A stretch of 64,000 nucleotides of DNA, taken from contig NC_067403.1 of assembly GCF_016432865.1 (NCBI RefSeq), positions 255,502,001 through 255,566,000 on the forward strand. Reading direction: 5' to 3'. Under the pieces are notes generated by a model. The model saw only the letters and a list, made by a program, of their open reading frames with translations, was not told the DNA's origin and searched no databases. Each line of letters starts with the position of its first letter. The first letter of the stretch is position 1. Below are positions 4,901 to 52,453 of the stretch, piece after piece. This DNA comes from Antechinus flavipes (lineage: Eukaryota). The position numbers were made by a program, and so were the translations under genes.

Positions 4901-7900
4901 NNNNNNNNNNNNNNNNNNNNNNNNNNNNNNNNNNNNNNNNNNNNNNNNNNNNNNNNNNNNNNNNNNNNNNNNNNNNNNNNNNNNNNNNNNNNNNNNNNNN
5001 NNNNNNNNNNNNNNNNNNNNNNNNNNNNNNNNNNNNNNNNNNNNNNNNNNNNNNNNNNNNNNNNNNNNNNNNNNNNNNNNNNNNNNNNNNNNNNNNNNNN
5101 NNNNNNNNNNNNNNNNNNNNNNNNNNNNNNNNNNNNNNNNNNNNNNNNNNNNNNNNNNNNNNNNNNNNNNNNNNNNNNNNNNNNNNNNNNNNNNNNNNNN
5201 NNNNNNNNNNNNNNNNNNNNNNNNNNNNNNNNNNNNNNNNNNNNNNNNNNNNNNNNNNNNNNNNNNNNNNNNNNNNNNNNNNNNNNNNNNNNNNNNNNNN
5301 NNNNNNNNNNNNNNNNNNNNNNNNNNNNNNNNNNNNNNNNNGAAGAGAAGAAGGAAAGAAGGAGGGAGGAAGGGGGGAGAGAGACAGAGAGAAAAAGGTA
5401 AACATGGGCAATCCCAGGTGATCCCAATGGTCTCCAAATCTCAAGCAGGGAAGGTTTCATGGAGGGACCTTGGAAATGAAGCTGTATCTCCCCAGGTACT
5501 GAGCTCATCACGGGCAGGCACAGCATCGGTGCCCCCTGAATGCAGCATGAATTTGCATGGGGATAATCTCGGAACCTTCATTTTTGCCAATGGAAAAGTC
5601 CTGGACGTGCGTGTGCTCAAAACGGACGGCCTTCCCTGGCCACACTTCATGTATGGAAGTGCTGGAACCAGTAAGGCCTACAGAGGGGAAATGACTTGGC
5701 TAAAGATACCCCCACCATCAGTGACATAGCTGGGAACAGAGCAGGCTAGTCCCCTCTCCCAGGCTGGCTCTCACGCCCAGGCTAGTCCCCTCTCCCAGGC
5801 TGGCTCCAGAATTGACCTGCCTTTGGATTTTCCCCACCACTGACCTGTCCTTTTCCTGTGCTGTGGAGAACATGCAACCTTCTAGTTTTCTCCTCTTTAC
5901 AGCCGTGGCTCTCACTTCTGCTTCCTCATCATCCCCCTTCAGATGGGAACCAGACCCTTGGGATTCTTGCGGCCCCAGAGCAGGTGGGTGCTGAGCCACT
6001 GAAGAAGGGCGCTAAGGGAGGAGGGAGGGGCGTTTTTCTTTAAGAGCTGGAAAGGAACCCTTGATACCAACCTCTCCCAGGAGAGACATATCGTCAGAAA
6101 CAGGTTAATGGGGTCCTAAGTTTAGAAGCGACCTCAGAGGGGTCATCTAGTCCAAAATCCCAAAGAGCATCAAGGGCTCATCCAAGGTCACACAGCCTCT
6201 CCTCCCAAACCCAAAGCCTTGGCTCGGGAGAAGCTATTTTTCCATTTTACTCAGAGGAAAACTCACCATGTCTGGGAGCTCGCTGTCTCCTCTGGAGGGC
6301 CCTGGGGGAGGACAAGAAGCACAGGGCTTCAGGAGACATGGCCGCTAGGATCTGGGGACCCCCTCCTCTGAGCAGGTCTGCCCGCAGCAAAGTGGTCAGG
6401 GGAGTCCTTTCTGCCTCCCTTCCCGCGGGCCCGCCCGGGCAGCCTCCATGTCTGCCTCCGGCAGCCTATTCATCTCCAGAAAGCTTCCAGGACGCGGCCC
6501 GTAGTGAGTGAGTGTGTGTGTGTGTGTGTGTGTGCGCTATGTGAGGGGTGTGTTTGTGTATACATGTATACACGTGTGTACAGGAGGGCACGTGTGTGTG
6601 TACATGTGTGTGTGTTGTGTAAGTGAAGGTGAGCAAGTGTTTGTGGGCTGGGGGCCCCCAGGACAAGGTCAGCTTCTTGAGAACAAGGGCTGATTCATTT
6701 TTTTCTTCTTTCAATCCCTAGCTCTTTCTAAGATTGTACTTGGAATGCAGTAGGAGGTTAATAAATGCTCACCAAATGGAACTGAACGGAATTCCTGAAA
6801 AAGTCCTGATTAACCCCTTCATGCCAAACTGGAGATGACTGGCAACAAGGCCAAAGCTTCAGACCTAGGGAGTTACAGAGAACTTACACCTCCATTACCC
6901 CATTCAAGGAGGACAAGTATTATTCTCCCCATTTGGAAAATGGGGAAACTGAGGCCCAGAGAGAGGCTAACTGCCCCGCAGGCGGACCAGCGAGCTGGGC
7001 AGGGGAGCCTGGGGAGAGGAGCTGCCCCTCGGTCTGCCCTCCCCCCTCCCCTTACTCACCGGCCGGCGCCCACTTCATCTCCACGTAGAGGGTGCAGACA
7101 AAAGGGTAGGGCTCGAGGAGGGCCGCCCCGTGCTTGAATCTCAGGTGGGACACGCGTTCCCATTTGCTCTTATCTGCCAGCCGGGGCTAAGGAGCACCAG
7201 GACATTTGAGAAAGGACCACAGGCTCCTGGGGGGTGGGATTCTAGCTCCCCACTCTCCATCCTCCCACATGGACCGGACTTTGGCAGTCCCCCTTAAGCC
7301 TAAGCAAGGCAGATGGAAGCCTGTTCCCATCCTTCCACACACAGAATCTGGGGGGTCGGGAGGGATTTCAGGGGACCAGGCCAGACCCCCTTCCGCGAGA
7401 ATCCCCAAGTGGCCCATCGGCCTCCACTTGGGTACTTCTGGTCCGTAAGCAAGTTCACAGACACGAGGTTATCCACGTCTTTCATAAACGATGGTGCCCA
7501 GAATACCCCACGATGCTCCGGGTCAGTTCTGACCAGTTTGGGGCCCCCTGCTCTGCTCTTCTCCCTCCCCTTGACCTTCCCCACCTACTTCTTTCTCCCT
7601 CAGGCCTGGACACTCTGCCCACTAAGACACCGCCAAGGTGCCATTGGCTTCTTTCCCCACCATATTCTCTGTAGACTCAAGTTGACCTAGAACCCAACAT
7701 TGCTGGAAGAAAAGATACAAGGAAATATGACGAAATGGTCAGTGGTAAATGGCTGCAGATTGTCCAGGTTCCCCAAGACGGCCCGAATGGAGTCCTAAAA
7801 ATGGGGGGAAAGCTTGTTTTAGCATTGTAATGGTCACGTGGCTCAGCCCACCTGTGCCCCTATCACCTTCTTCTGGGCTATTTCTTCTCTTGCTTTAGGT

Positions 7901-48260: not shown

Positions 48261-49444
48261 CTTGAGCCTCTGGGTGTCTCCTTGGTCCCTCCCTCTTTAT
48301 TGGTGAACTCCCGAGGGAGATCAAAGCGGGACAAGGCCCGGCTGGGGCTCGGTTTCGGGATGTGGAGACGGGGCTTGGCTCCGGTCGCCTCCTCGGCCCC
48401 TTCCAGCTCTAAATCTGCCGTCCTTTGCTTAGAATTGTGTCCCCGGGCCGACCGGTGTCAGTGTCAACGATCAGCGGGGGCTCCTGAGCCCTGGTTTTTG
48501 GTGGATCCAGACTCTGAACCCGGGAGGCTTTTGGGTAACCCTGCTGTAAAAGTTGGGGTTCGGGTGCCTCCGGATGCCCGATACTTACTTGTATTCACAC
48601 CCTGAGTTTCCCCAGAGGAGGGATTCCATCTTTAGTCTCAAGGCTCAGGACGGTGCCCTGAAAACAGCAGCCGCTTCTTGACAAGCCCACCCTGAGATCC
48701 CAGTCTCACGGACGAAGGGCAGAGAGAGGGAAACTGCGCTCCAGTCCCCGGGAACTCGGCTGGTCCCCCACTTGTTCCACAAAGGGGGAAACCGAGGTTT
48801 AGAGCCTCGAAGGGGGTCTGCCACCTTGCTAAGGGTGGGAAGGGATACAGCCAATGGGTCTCATTGCCTCGGACCAGCCCCTGGCCCCTCAAACTCTCCC
48901 CTCGTCTAAGGTGACTGCGGGGCATGGCTCCCATCTCAGGGGGTGTAGACTGGCAGACCTCCACTCCCCTAGGCCTCCCCCCTAGCCCCGGGAGCTATTC
49001 CCGCACGGGAAGGGGACAAGGGGGAAAGTGGGGTTGGTCCTGCATAGGCGGGGGGAGGGGGAGGGGGGGAGAGGCAGAGTGTGGGCTCTGCCACCTGGAG
49101 GCTGCCCCTTCCCCCCAGGGGAAGCTGAAGCGGGAGGAAGCCAGTACCAATGGAAGGGGAAAGCCTGTCTCCCCTCCCCCCAGCACCTTCCTCCCCTCCC
49201 CCATCCCCCACCCCCCCACCGACCAGGCCGGCTCCTTCAGGGTCAGGACTTGCCAGCTGAGGGTCCTCCTCCGGACAGCCCCATGTCCCGACCCCAAGGC
49301 CCGGCCAGAGCGAGATGGCTGCCCTGGACCAAAGCAGCGAAGGGCCATAGAGCAGGAGCTGGCCGAGACCTCAGAGGAAGCACTTCCACAGATGGGGAAA
49401 CCGAGGCCCCCAGAGCTCCCAGCGCTGCCGTGAGCAGGGTCCGA

Positions 49445-49655
49445 AGTGGGCCTTTCTCGCAGGCGTCCCAGCCCAGCCCGCGGGGGGGGGGGGGGGGGGG
49501 GGGAGGGGACGGGGGGGGGAGCGGGAGGTGTCCCAGCCCACAGTGGGGGGGGATAGGGGGATGGGAGGGGGGGAGCGGGAGGCATCCCAGCCCAGCCTGT
49601 GGGGAAGGGGGGATGGGAGGGGGGGAGCGGGAGGCGTCCCAGCCCAGCCTGCGGC
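49445..49655. repeat. ~50-bp G-rich tandem repeat, ~4 copies
   Basis: gggagcgggagg(c/t)(g/a)tcccagccca recurs between long G tracts. Confidence 0.8.
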
Positions 49656-49918
49656 GGGAGTGGGATCCCAGGGCTGGCCCCCGGCCCTCTTTTCCAGTGA
49701 TTCATTTCTTTGGCTTCTGGGATGGGACGAGCCTTATCTCCTGGGGGGGGAGGGGGCCTCTCCCAGGCTCCTATCTCTTCCATCTCAGCCTTATCTCTCG
49801 TGAGTGTCCCTGTCCTTGAATCACTTGGGGATGGGAGGGGCTGGGGCCAGAATCCAGGGGGTTGTTCCCACAGCCCCCCCAGACACAGGCCCAGGCAGGC
49901 GCGGGGACAGCTAAGGTT

Positions 49919-50532
49919 TTATTGGGGACACTGAGGAGGGTGCGACACAGAACCCTGGCGTGGGGCCTTCTCGCAGGGGCGCAGCCCCTCCCTCCCGCCT
50001 GCGCCCAGAACCCCCACATCCTCCCCTCCCCAGGGCATGGGGGAGAGCGGGGAGCCGCTGGGAGCCTCGTTCAGAAGGAGGAACACGGGCGGTCCTGGGG
50101 GGCTGGAGGCCAACCTGGAGACCTGGGGGGGGATGAGCGTGAGCTTGTCGGGGGGGATTCGGGGCTGGCTGTCCGCCACCTCCGCCCTCCTCAGGCCGGG
50201 CCCAGCCCCCTCCCGATGCCGGCCCAGGGCCTCACCAGGCTTTGGAGTTTCTCCTCCAGGTCTCGGTGGGCCTTGTGGGCACTGGCCAAGTCCTCCTGCA
50301 GCCTGGGGGGAGAAGCCCTTCAGAGCCCTCCCTCCCCGCCCTCGGAACCTCTGGGATACCGGCTGTGGCCAAGGAAGGATCCGCAGCGACACGTCCAGGG
50401 GAGGGCCCGGGGCCCCCGCACCTGCTTCATACCTGCCATCTCCTCCCCTTCCAGCCCCTCGTGGCCGTCCTGGCTGATCTCCGTCCTTGCTCCATCCCTC
50501 CCCTCGCCTCCCTGAAGCCACGGCGGGTGGAG

Positions 50533-50566
<34 letters not shown>

Positions 50567-51897
50567 AAGGGGGGGGGAGCTGCTCGGTGCCAGCCCAGAG
50601 CTGGCCTCCCCCGGCCGGGGTCACCATAAAAGTCGGGGGCCGTTCCTGCCCTTTTCTCCGGCCCCGCCCAGTCCATCTTATCCCCACACGGACAGACTGA
50701 GGTTCACACGGGCCGCAGGATTCCGGGCCAGGCCCAAGGCCTGGAGAGACTCGCTCCCCCTCCCTCACAGCGAGCCCCCACCTGACAGAGCTGCCTGCGG
50801 GCCCTTAATCTGTCCCCCCCCCCCCCCCCGCACCAAGTGGGGGCTGAAAGGGGCCCAACTCCTCAATCCGGCCTCACCTCAGGAACTGCTCCTTCAAGGT
50901 CATCAGCTCCTCCCACACCTGCCCCAGGTAGAGCTTGGGCTCCCCTTCCTCCTCTGTGGATCCCAGGGAGCCCCTGGGGAGAGGAGGCGGGCTTGAGGGA
51001 AGGCTGGGGCCGCAGCCCCAATGAGATAAAACTCCCTGCTCCACAAAGCCCCCGACGCCCCCATCCTGCCCCTCGCACCGCCGTGCTCGGGTTCCCTCCC
51101 CCCACCCCGGGGCGTTCAGCGGGTCCCAGTCATCCCGGATCGGGGGAGGGCCGGGGCCGGGCTCTGTCCCAGGAGATGCTGAGGAAACGGTGAGGATGAA
51201 GCCAGACCATGGGGGCGGGAGGGGGGAACAAGGAGAGCCCAAGGGGGAGACGAGCTGTCCCCAAGCTCCCCCCCTCCACTCACCCTCCGGGCTCAGGCAG
51301 CTCTGGGGGCCTCCGGACAGCTGCTCCTCCAGGAAAGTCGGCTGAAAAACAAACGGACGGGGGGATGGCAGGGCCAGCTTCTCCCAGCCCCCTCCCCTGC
51401 CCTTCTCTTACCTGGCGCGGGGGCTTCGCTCCCTGTCTTTCCTGGGGAGGAGAGTACCCCAGATGGTCCAGAGCCCCCTTCCAGCCCAGAGCCCGGAGCT
51501 GAGCGGGACTCAGCACCCTCTGCGTGATCTCGTCAAGGAAGGCGGAAAACCTCAGCCTCTCCCCCAGGCCCCGGCCGCCAATCAGCGGCCCCCTGCCCAG
51601 CCTGGGGGGGTGACCCAAGGAGCCCGGGGAGGAGCACGGCGAGCTCTGGGAGGACTCCTGGGCCCAGGCCCCTGGAGGCTGGAAGAACTTTTCTAGGACC
51701 TTCAGTTTGCCCTCAGCCACTCCCGGCGCGCCCCTGGCCCAGGACCCTAAGCTCTGGCTCATGGCGGCTGCCGCGTACCCAGCGAAGCTGCCCCTTCTGG
51801 GGCTCCGACCTCCCTCTGGCGCCCCCCCCCGTGTGCCCTCTCCCCGCCCGGAGTCTGGGAGAACAGCCCCGGGCTGGAGCTCGTCGATATCCTCCAT
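49919..51897 (-). CDS. Unnamed 6-exon protein-coding gene, 327 aa, with a C-terminal coiled coil
   Basis: Exons 51412-51897, 51284-51341, 51106-51178, 50878-50973, 50236-50302 and 49919-50122. All introns are GT-AG and phases join (0,1,2,2,0), giving 984 nt with no internal stop. Good Kozak context (caaATGG with an in-frame TAG upstream) and AATAAA at the stop. Confidence 0.72.
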
Positions 51898-52447
51898 TTG
51901 CCAAGTGCGGGGAATAGGCTCGGTCCCGTCAATACCTTCGCTGACATTTATTGAGCGCCGACCTCCCTCCTAGCCCTGACCTTGGAGGGGACGCCGGGGC
52001 TGCCTCTGGGATTGGATCTTTCCTCCAGGATGGCCCTGGCAGAGCCTAATGGTCTAGAGCAGTGCTTTGCACGGGGTCTGACCGAGCCGCTCCCCCCACT
52101 CAGTAATCTCCCGTTGTCAGGATCCAAGAGGGCTCATGTAGCGCCTTCCAGAACTAGTCCTCGGGTCTGGCCGGCCTGGGGGCTGTTCCTCGGGCCCACC
52201 AATCCTGCCTCTTGCCCTCAGGCCCCCGTCCTTCCCGTCCAGGCCAGTCTCGGGACCCCTTAGACCTCCATTTTCCTCAGAAGCTCAGTTCCACACTGCC
52301 CCCCCTCCCCCAGTGCCTTGGAGGCAAGGACCATTGGAAAAGCTATTTCCTCAATTGCCCCTTGTACTGAATTGACCTTAGGTGGGCCCACGGGCCCAGG
52401 CCCGACCTCCATGAAACCAGACACAACGCAGAGATGGAAGGAAGCAG

Positions 52448-52453
52448 TTTATT
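52448..52453 (-). terminator. CDCA5 polyadenylation signal AATAAA
   Basis: tttatt on the plus strand about 1.3 kb past the CDCA5 stop. Confidence 0.6.

Follow-up and report, generated by a model that had tools for sequence, protein, structure and literature searches.

A five-exon coding gene probably maintained between CDCA5 and NAALADL1 in marsupials, and its likely place in the TJAP1/BEGAIN family

On the minus strand of a 64,000-nucleotide (nt) stretch of the genome of the marsupial Antechinus flavipes (contig NC_067403.1, positions 255,502,001 to 255,566,000; the whole stretch is referred to here as the window, and positions are counted from its first letter), the interval between CDCA5 and NAALADL1 holds a series of open segments with canonical splice borders. 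An initial annotation made from the letters alone had joined six of them into an intact gene for a protein of 327 amino acids (aa), taken to be either an ancestral gene lost or unannotated in human or an uncharacterized coiled-coil adaptor. Is there a gene here, what is its structure, and to which family does it belong? The GC content of the region is 64 to 69% and long open frames occur on both strands, so that openness alone means little. The comparisons described below suggest that the interval does contain a protein-coding gene on the minus strand, that it has five coding exons encoding about 258 aa and is selectively maintained, and that the locus represents, by position, the marsupial orthologue of an old TJAP1/BEGAIN-family gene of gnathostomes. 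We put the probability of this reading as a whole at roughly 0.8.

A word-based protein search with exon 1 matched eight proteins, seven of them from named marsupial species (Sarcophilus, Sminthopsis, Vombatus, Notamacropus, Phascolarctos, Petaurus, and Dromiciops) and the eighth a MetaClust entry that groups with them. The identity of the marsupial orthologues ranged from 66 to 87%, and the open frame is unbroken in at least eight marsupial species, covering the Australian orders and Dromiciops, with P0006 the most divergent. The order of genes in Sminthopsis (ZFPL1, sororin/CDCA5, the gene, NAALADL1) is the same as that in the window, and the two loci are colinear throughout. The databases list the orthologues as "uncharacterized protein" or "uncharacterized protein LOC...", so that models from NCBI already exist in seven marsupial species and the gene is not unannotated. 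What appears to be new is the corrected structure in the A. flavipes genome, a likely indel in the assembly, and a link to an unstudied paralogue found across gnathostomes.

To define the structure, four orthologue proteins (Sminthopsis, Sarcophilus, Dromiciops, and koala) were mapped onto their own loci. Five coding exons were found in three of the four, and the first four exons are common to all of them; the Sarcophilus model has a sixth, alternative 3' exon. In Sminthopsis, the coding exons measure 351, 65, 102, 67, and 204 nt, with phases as in the window model. The orthologue models start at the Met equivalent to window position 51762, not 51897, and they splice exon 2 directly to the fourth segment of the initial annotation, skipping 51178-51106. 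Transferred to the window, this gives the following features, all on the minus strand.

51762-51760, minus strand: start ATG in the context GCCGCCATGA, with the ATG and the frame conserved in the four marsupial loci.
51412-51762, minus strand: coding exon 1, 117 codons, ending in phase 0; the orthologue proteins begin here.
About 51720-51676, minus strand: AGKLKVLEKFF motif within coding exon 1.
About 51567-51478, minus strand: RFSAFLDEIT...LGW block (the RFS block) within coding exon 1.
51284-51341, minus strand: coding exon 2, 58 nt in the assembly, or 59 nt once the extra base described below is added; 65 nt in the orthologues and 71 nt in koala.
50878-50973, minus strand: coding exon 3 (fourth segment of the initial annotation), 96 nt; the orthologue exon is 102 to 108 nt, with the same phases.
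50236-50302, minus strand: coding exon 4 (fifth segment), 67 nt, as in all four marsupial loci, ending in phase 0.
49922-50122, minus strand: last coding exon (sixth segment), a marsupial-specific Pro-rich tail with a conserved PPGPPVF(L/F)LLNEAP stretch.
49924-49922, minus strand: stop TAA, overlapping the polyadenylation signal AATAAA at 49918-49923.

An acidic stretch and the first half of a coiled coil are encoded by coding exon 3, whose last codon, for Arg, is split by the intron; coding exon 4 encodes the second half of that coil. The six segments joined in the initial annotation (51897-51412, 51341-51284, 51178-51106, 50973-50878, 50302-50236, and 50122-49922, minus strand, with the TAA lying within the AATAAA at 49918-49923) do all have AG/GT borders and do make a stop-free frame, but two parts of that model gave way: the third segment and the first 45 codons.

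The third segment is bound up with a missing base in exon 2. DNA alignment showed that exon 2 of the window is 7 nt shorter than that of loci L001 to L003, and the window matched the orthologues in one frame up to "EEQLS" and in another frame ("PPELPEPGG") after it. We then examined positions 49900 to 52000 in four public DNA runs (X1, X2, X3, and X6) from three organisms that are 0.3 to 3% divergent from the window. All four carry one extra base relative to the window in exon 2, at 51312/51313; on the plus strand, X2, X3, and X6 have a C after 51312, and X1 has a T after 51313. None of the four runs has a frame-breaking indel in the conserved coding sequence. When a placeholder base N was restored, exon 2 joined 50973 directly and the five-exon model became open, with 258 aa; the restored exon of 59 nt is six below the orthologues, hence in frame, and reads "...EEQLS(G/E)RPPELPEPG". 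The base falls at a G/A polymorphism in a short run of Gs, where long-read assemblies typically suffer consensus errors, and its absence is therefore most likely an error of this kind.

Could the deletion instead be real, making the locus a fresh pseudogene or a loss-of-function allele in the sequenced animal or its lineage? As assembled, the five-exon model does shift frame after "EEQLS" and run into stops, and the runs that we checked all come from individuals other than the assembled one. The base is nevertheless present in four of four runs, two of them only 0.3 to 1% divergent, the site is of a kind prone to consensus errors, and the coding sequence is otherwise free of disabling changes, so that we consider a real deletion unlikely.

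With the missing base taken as an assembly error, the 73-nt third segment (51106-51178, minus strand) is accounted for as well. It is intronic and restores the frame that the missing base breaks, and it appears to be a frameshift-cancelling artefact of the 1-nt gap in the assembly rather than part of the conserved gene. No orthologue model contains the segment; Sminthopsis and Sarcophilus lack its donor GT, and the region has large indels; and X6 has a 5-nt CGGAT insertion behind 51135, inside it. Where the extra base is present, as it is in the relatives, use of the segment would break the frame. A frame can also be rescued easily here: 11 of the 59 AG..GT cassettes that can be drawn in the 310-nt intron restore it without a stop, and finding one such cassette is therefore unremarkable. 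An alternative rescue donor 4 nt downstream (TGA/GTGGAG) was considered and set aside; it also restores the frame, is weaker than the adjacent perfect G/GTGAGT, and is unneeded when the extra base is present.

The opposite view, that the six-exon model is right and that a newly exonized cassette offsets a real 1-nt deletion to yield a protein of 327 or 282 aa, can point to a good polypyrimidine-AG acceptor, a GT donor, and exact restoration of the frame. Restoration of the frame is common to the 11 cassettes just mentioned, however, and the donor is weak (GG/GTGGGG); together with the frame and the CGGAT insertion in the relatives and the lack of the cassette from every orthologue model, this makes such an exon very improbable. 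The 132-nt stretch between the third and fourth segments is open, as had been noted, but the retained-intron isoform proposed for it rests on the artefactual segment.

The second part of the initial model that was not conserved as coding is its start at 51897.

51763-51897, minus strand: 45-codon N-terminal extension, open and in frame in A. flavipes only.
51898-51990, minus strand: conserved noncoding block, whose alignment across Sminthopsis, Sarcophilus, Dromiciops, and koala is about as good as that of the coding exon.

Upstream of 51762, the indels between species are not multiples of three and include a 5-nt gap right behind the ATG at 51897; no in-frame, stop-free upstream ATG was found in Sminthopsis, Sarcophilus, Dromiciops, or koala; and X3 has a 2-nt insertion behind 51821, within the extension. 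For these reasons the extension is most likely 5' untranslated region (UTR). The block at 51898-51990, which spans four marsupial orders and contains CTCAATAAATGTCAG as well as an AATAAA at 51947-51952, probably belongs to the promoter or the 5' UTR. CTCAATAAATGTCAG appears to resemble the end of a MIR-type short interspersed nuclear element, and so does CATTTACTCAGCATCTCC at the acceptor of the 73-nt segment. A further AATAAA, at 52448-52453 on the minus strand, lies 551 nt upstream of the ATG at 51897, in agreement with the spacing that had been reported.

Is the five-exon frame under selection? Pairwise estimates by the NG86 method gave whole-gene ratios of nonsynonymous to synonymous substitution rates (dN/dS) of 0.23 to 0.51, and none of 300 bootstraps per pair reached 1. 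The RFS block (residues 56 to 96) gave 0 to 0.15 and the coiled coil gave 0.15 to 0.35, with the linkers above both and the distal tail near neutral, at about 1 in the most divergent comparisons. Purifying selection is thus concentrated on the motifs. The close relatives add five synonymous and five nonsynonymous listed differences in the coding sequence, too few to weigh. The RFSAFLDEIT block and the heptad segment assembled across the 50878/50302 junction, both of which had been singled out from the letters alone, are present and are the most conserved parts of the gene. These ratios, with the orthologues and the synteny, bear out an intact gene between CDCA5 and NAALADL1.

They also bear on the idea that the locus is a noncoding or decaying remnant of a long ancestral gene and the open frame a by-product of GC-rich sequence. 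At 69% GC, long open frames are common on both strands, two thirds of the ancestral protein (see below) is gone, and the distal tail evolves at a ratio of about 1. Against this, the frame is intact in at least eight marsupial species, the splice sites and phases are conserved, the gene as a whole evolves at a ratio well under 1, and the RFS block hardly varies; decay is accordingly a highly unlikely account of the locus, and we retain that of a maintained coding gene.

To find its relatives, we carried out an exhaustive profile search, which returned 46 proteins at E values below 1e-3, including three marsupial representatives. Among the sequences inspected, most of the nonmarsupial matches cover both the RFS block and the coil. 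The sources that could be named are turtles, lizards, alligator, frogs, sturgeon, Polypterus, teleosts, and sharks, and the proteins are called "uncharacterized" or "TJAP1-like" or carry misnomers; one match, from a plant, is an evident false positive. A word search with the turtle protein described below matched 26 proteins, most with the BEGAIN_coil family (PF27583) on record, adding salamanders and including no bird or mammal. A word search with the turtle coil (aa 480 to 600) returned reptile orthologues only. The relatives in sharks, fishes, amphibians, and reptiles are long, at 650 to 1,190 aa. No eutherian protein appeared in two very large protein searches, which covered protein sets and not genomes, and likewise no monotreme or bird protein was found in the protein databases, as opposed to genomes. 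The absence from protein sets fits the suggestion that the gene is lost or unannotated in human.

The most informative long form is LOC120369056 (867 aa) of the turtle Mauremys reevesii. It has a precomputed BEGAIN_coil match, and a gene of the NAALADL1 type (PA/Peptidase_M28/TFR_dimer) lies 1.5 kb downstream on the same strand. In the window, in Sminthopsis, and in the turtle (locus L005) alike, the gene thus lies immediately upstream of NAALADL1 and in the same orientation. When four long proteins were compared by tblastn with the window and the four marsupial loci, the turtle protein aligned to the window in four colinear blocks.

Turtle aa 34-48: window 51720-51676.
Turtle aa 283-312: window 51567-51478.
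Turtle aa 488-504: window 50927-50877.
Turtle aa 504-531: window 50304-50233.

Turtle aa 532 to 867 had no match by tblastn in the window or the four marsupial loci, and the last marsupial exon has no detectable similarity to them. Of the six turtle exons, the first and the fourth both end in phase 0, the fourth having a probable length of 67 nt judging from the mapped residues, and the third closes on the split Arg of "KFSR/LQED". These phases match those of marsupial exons 1 to 4. Profile comparison (hhalign) aligned the marsupial coil to the turtle coil with 97.9% probability over 41 columns (turtle aa 486 to 526). The marsupial proteins carry the motifs of the family in the same order, AGKLxV[LM]EKFF, then the [KR]FSxFL[DN]E[IV]T..[VI].SP..L..LG block (LGW in amniotes), then the WEEL..LKE.F.RLQE coil, and they share the amniote LGW and the RLQED type of coil. 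In a tree, they grouped with the reptile/salamander/Polypterus/catfish type, split from the TJAP1 type by a branch with support of 100/99. The marsupial gene is therefore like the NAALADL1-adjacent long form in position, strand, the phases of the first four exons, the three motifs in order, and the clade, and the claim that it was ancestral holds, with a positional and structural orthologue in turtle and family members from sharks to reptiles.

The differences from the long form, whose cluster mates are named "tight junction-associated protein 1-like," are as plain. The marsupial protein has about 258 aa, against 650 to 1,190 aa, and is missing the roughly 240 residues that separate the two N-terminal motifs. 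Also absent are the coil's second half and the C-terminal exon of roughly 300 residues, in place of which it has the Pro-rich tail. In tetrapods the long forms terminate in DSTLL, which resembles a class I PDZ ligand, whereas the marsupial proteins end otherwise. Marsupials thus do not show the full-length architecture of the tetrapod forms, in which an entire coil is followed by a long C-terminal exon with DSTLL at its end.

Could the gene simply be TJAP1 or BEGAIN? TJAP1 (Pilt) and BEGAIN, the characterized members of the family, have coiled coils and bind scaffold proteins of the MAGUK group, DLG1 and PSD-95 among them. The first part of the coil is homologous to that of the marsupial proteins, with hhalign giving 92% probability to aa 453 to 505 of TJAP1 from Amia calva. 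The Amia TJAP1 protein (P0079, 1,026 aa) matches the Pilt domain (PF15453) at 1.4e-134 and also has the RFS block and the coil; teleost TJAP1 bears the block as well. In fish proteins of the TJAP1 type (P0079, P0021, and P0020), recognized by the Pilt domain or a G-x-L-L-D end, the RFSxFLxEIT block lies in a large N-terminal insert. Because a Pilt-bearing Amia protein and teleost TJAP1 carry it, the block is ancestral to the whole TJAP1/BEGAIN family and not specific to a third paralogue. The canonical mammalian isoforms of TJAP1 and BEGAIN are not known to carry it.

In contrast to TJAP1, the marsupial proteins have neither the Pilt domain nor a G-x-L-L-D/N C terminus, and they fall in a separate clade. 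The Pilt model had no match in the marsupial proteins or the turtle orthologue, in a scan in which the Amia protein served as the positive control. Since Pilt is absent, DSTLL is absent, and the RFS block is ancestral to the family, we read the gene as a derived, much-reduced member of a TJAP1/BEGAIN-related paralogue, and as neither TJAP1 nor BEGAIN. The description as an uncharacterized coiled-coil adaptor was thus a fair one, which had not placed the protein in this family.

Several points weigh against this interpretation. The tree rests on 72 columns and includes no confirmed BEGAIN sequence, and the homology of the coil by profile comparison extends over 41 to 49 residues only. The marsupial proteins have no Pfam hit, either precomputed or in local scans: PF27583 is precomputed for the long orthologues and not for them, and our local scan gave no BEGAIN_coil match even for proteins with PF27583 on record, apparently because the local copy is without that model. 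Scans of exon 1 and the marsupial proteins with Pfam and NCBIfam gave sub-threshold coiled-coil noise only, for example, ATG16 and Lebercilin. The family coil is reduced to about 45 residues, and the Pilt domain is absent. Of the six public runs found to contain the stretch, none is recorded as RNA, and the contigs of the close-relative runs are genomic, without exon joints. Lastly, no run comes from the assembled individual (best word share, 0.70), so that the 1-nt deletion could be a real allele, in which case the gene would be broken in the assembled animal. In a separate feature search of the ESM Atlas with exon 1, scores of up to 0.88 to RabGAP-TBC clusters were treated as chance.

What remains of the ancestral protein in marsupials is the AGKLxVxEKFF motif near the N terminus, the helical RFSxFLxEITxRVLSPxxLxxLGW segment of about 30 residues, and the first 45 or so residues of the family coiled coil; lost are the stretch of roughly 240 residues separating the first motif from the second, the remainder of the coil, and the whole C-terminal half with its DSTLL end. 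AlphaFold2, given an alignment of eight sequences, predicted helices at residues 66 to 83 and 86 to 91, corresponding to the RFS block, and a 48-residue helix at 153 to 200, with disorder elsewhere. The mean confidence (predicted local distance difference test score) was 49, with values of 72 to 80 in the long helix. In that helix, hydrophobic residues follow a clean 3-4-3-4 spacing over 5.5 heptads.

These features are consistent with a small, mostly disordered adaptor that would pair through a short leucine-zipper-like helix, either with itself or with a member of the family, and might thereby present the invariant RFS...LGW helix-turn-helix to a putative partner. Binding to MAGUK proteins through Pilt would be excluded, the domain being missing. 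A broader proposal, to which we give slightly less than even odds, is that marsupials keep, under purifying selection, a minimal form (two motifs and half a zipper) of an ancient, wholly uncharacterized vertebrate scaffold gene that was lost in eutherians and birds and that the invariant RFSxFLxEIT...LGW helix of about 30 residues, shared with fish TJAP1, is an undescribed docking module and the functional core of the long N-terminal exon.

A literature search found nothing on a third TJAP1/BEGAIN paralogue. The only functional hint comes from zebrafish, in which si:ch211-276i12.4 is mentioned in passing as one marker of a mature cluster of neurons in the optic tectum (PMC8869500). The link to the marsupial gene is indirect, through a catfish member of the family (P0016) that the NCBI annotation names after si:ch211-276i12.4.

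For annotation, these results mean that the locus should be entered as a five-exon gene of about 258 aa and that the 1-nt indel in the assembly should be flagged. The family link gives the marsupial "uncharacterized LOC" genes a name, an evolutionary history, and testable motifs. The marsupial gene can also be viewed as a natural deletion experiment: over about 80 million years, by our estimate of the age of the marsupial split, selection has spared nothing but the KFF motif, the RFS...LGW helix, and the initial heptads of the coil, and these are therefore the parts to test for partners. If eutherians and birds truly are without the gene, its absence would be a clean lineage-specific loss beside a cell-cycle gene. 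We regard the finding as useful, although not field-changing.

Some further observations concern individual models and the surrounding sequence. The NCBI model for Dromiciops (216 aa) begins at an internal Met (L003 5839-6190); the DNA encodes the full conserved N terminus, KFF motif included, in an unbroken frame from an ATG at 5839. Between the gene and NAALADL1, at 48995-49819 of the window, two overlapping Pro/Gly-rich open reading frames of 262 to 263 aa lie on opposite strands; they do not resemble the C-terminal half that the turtle orthologue has and marsupials have lost, and they probably reflect GC-rich sequence of low complexity. A 24-nt deletion at 51009, within the intron preceding the first coil exon, is common to X3 and X6. 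The intron between the two coil exons contains a long poly-C/poly-G tract (50521-50581), at which the contigs of all of the relatives' runs break. In the Sarcophilus model, a splice leads from within the last exon to the extra 3' exon 1.4 kb downstream (L002 9280-9378); this gives a different C terminus and is possibly an alternative 3' end.

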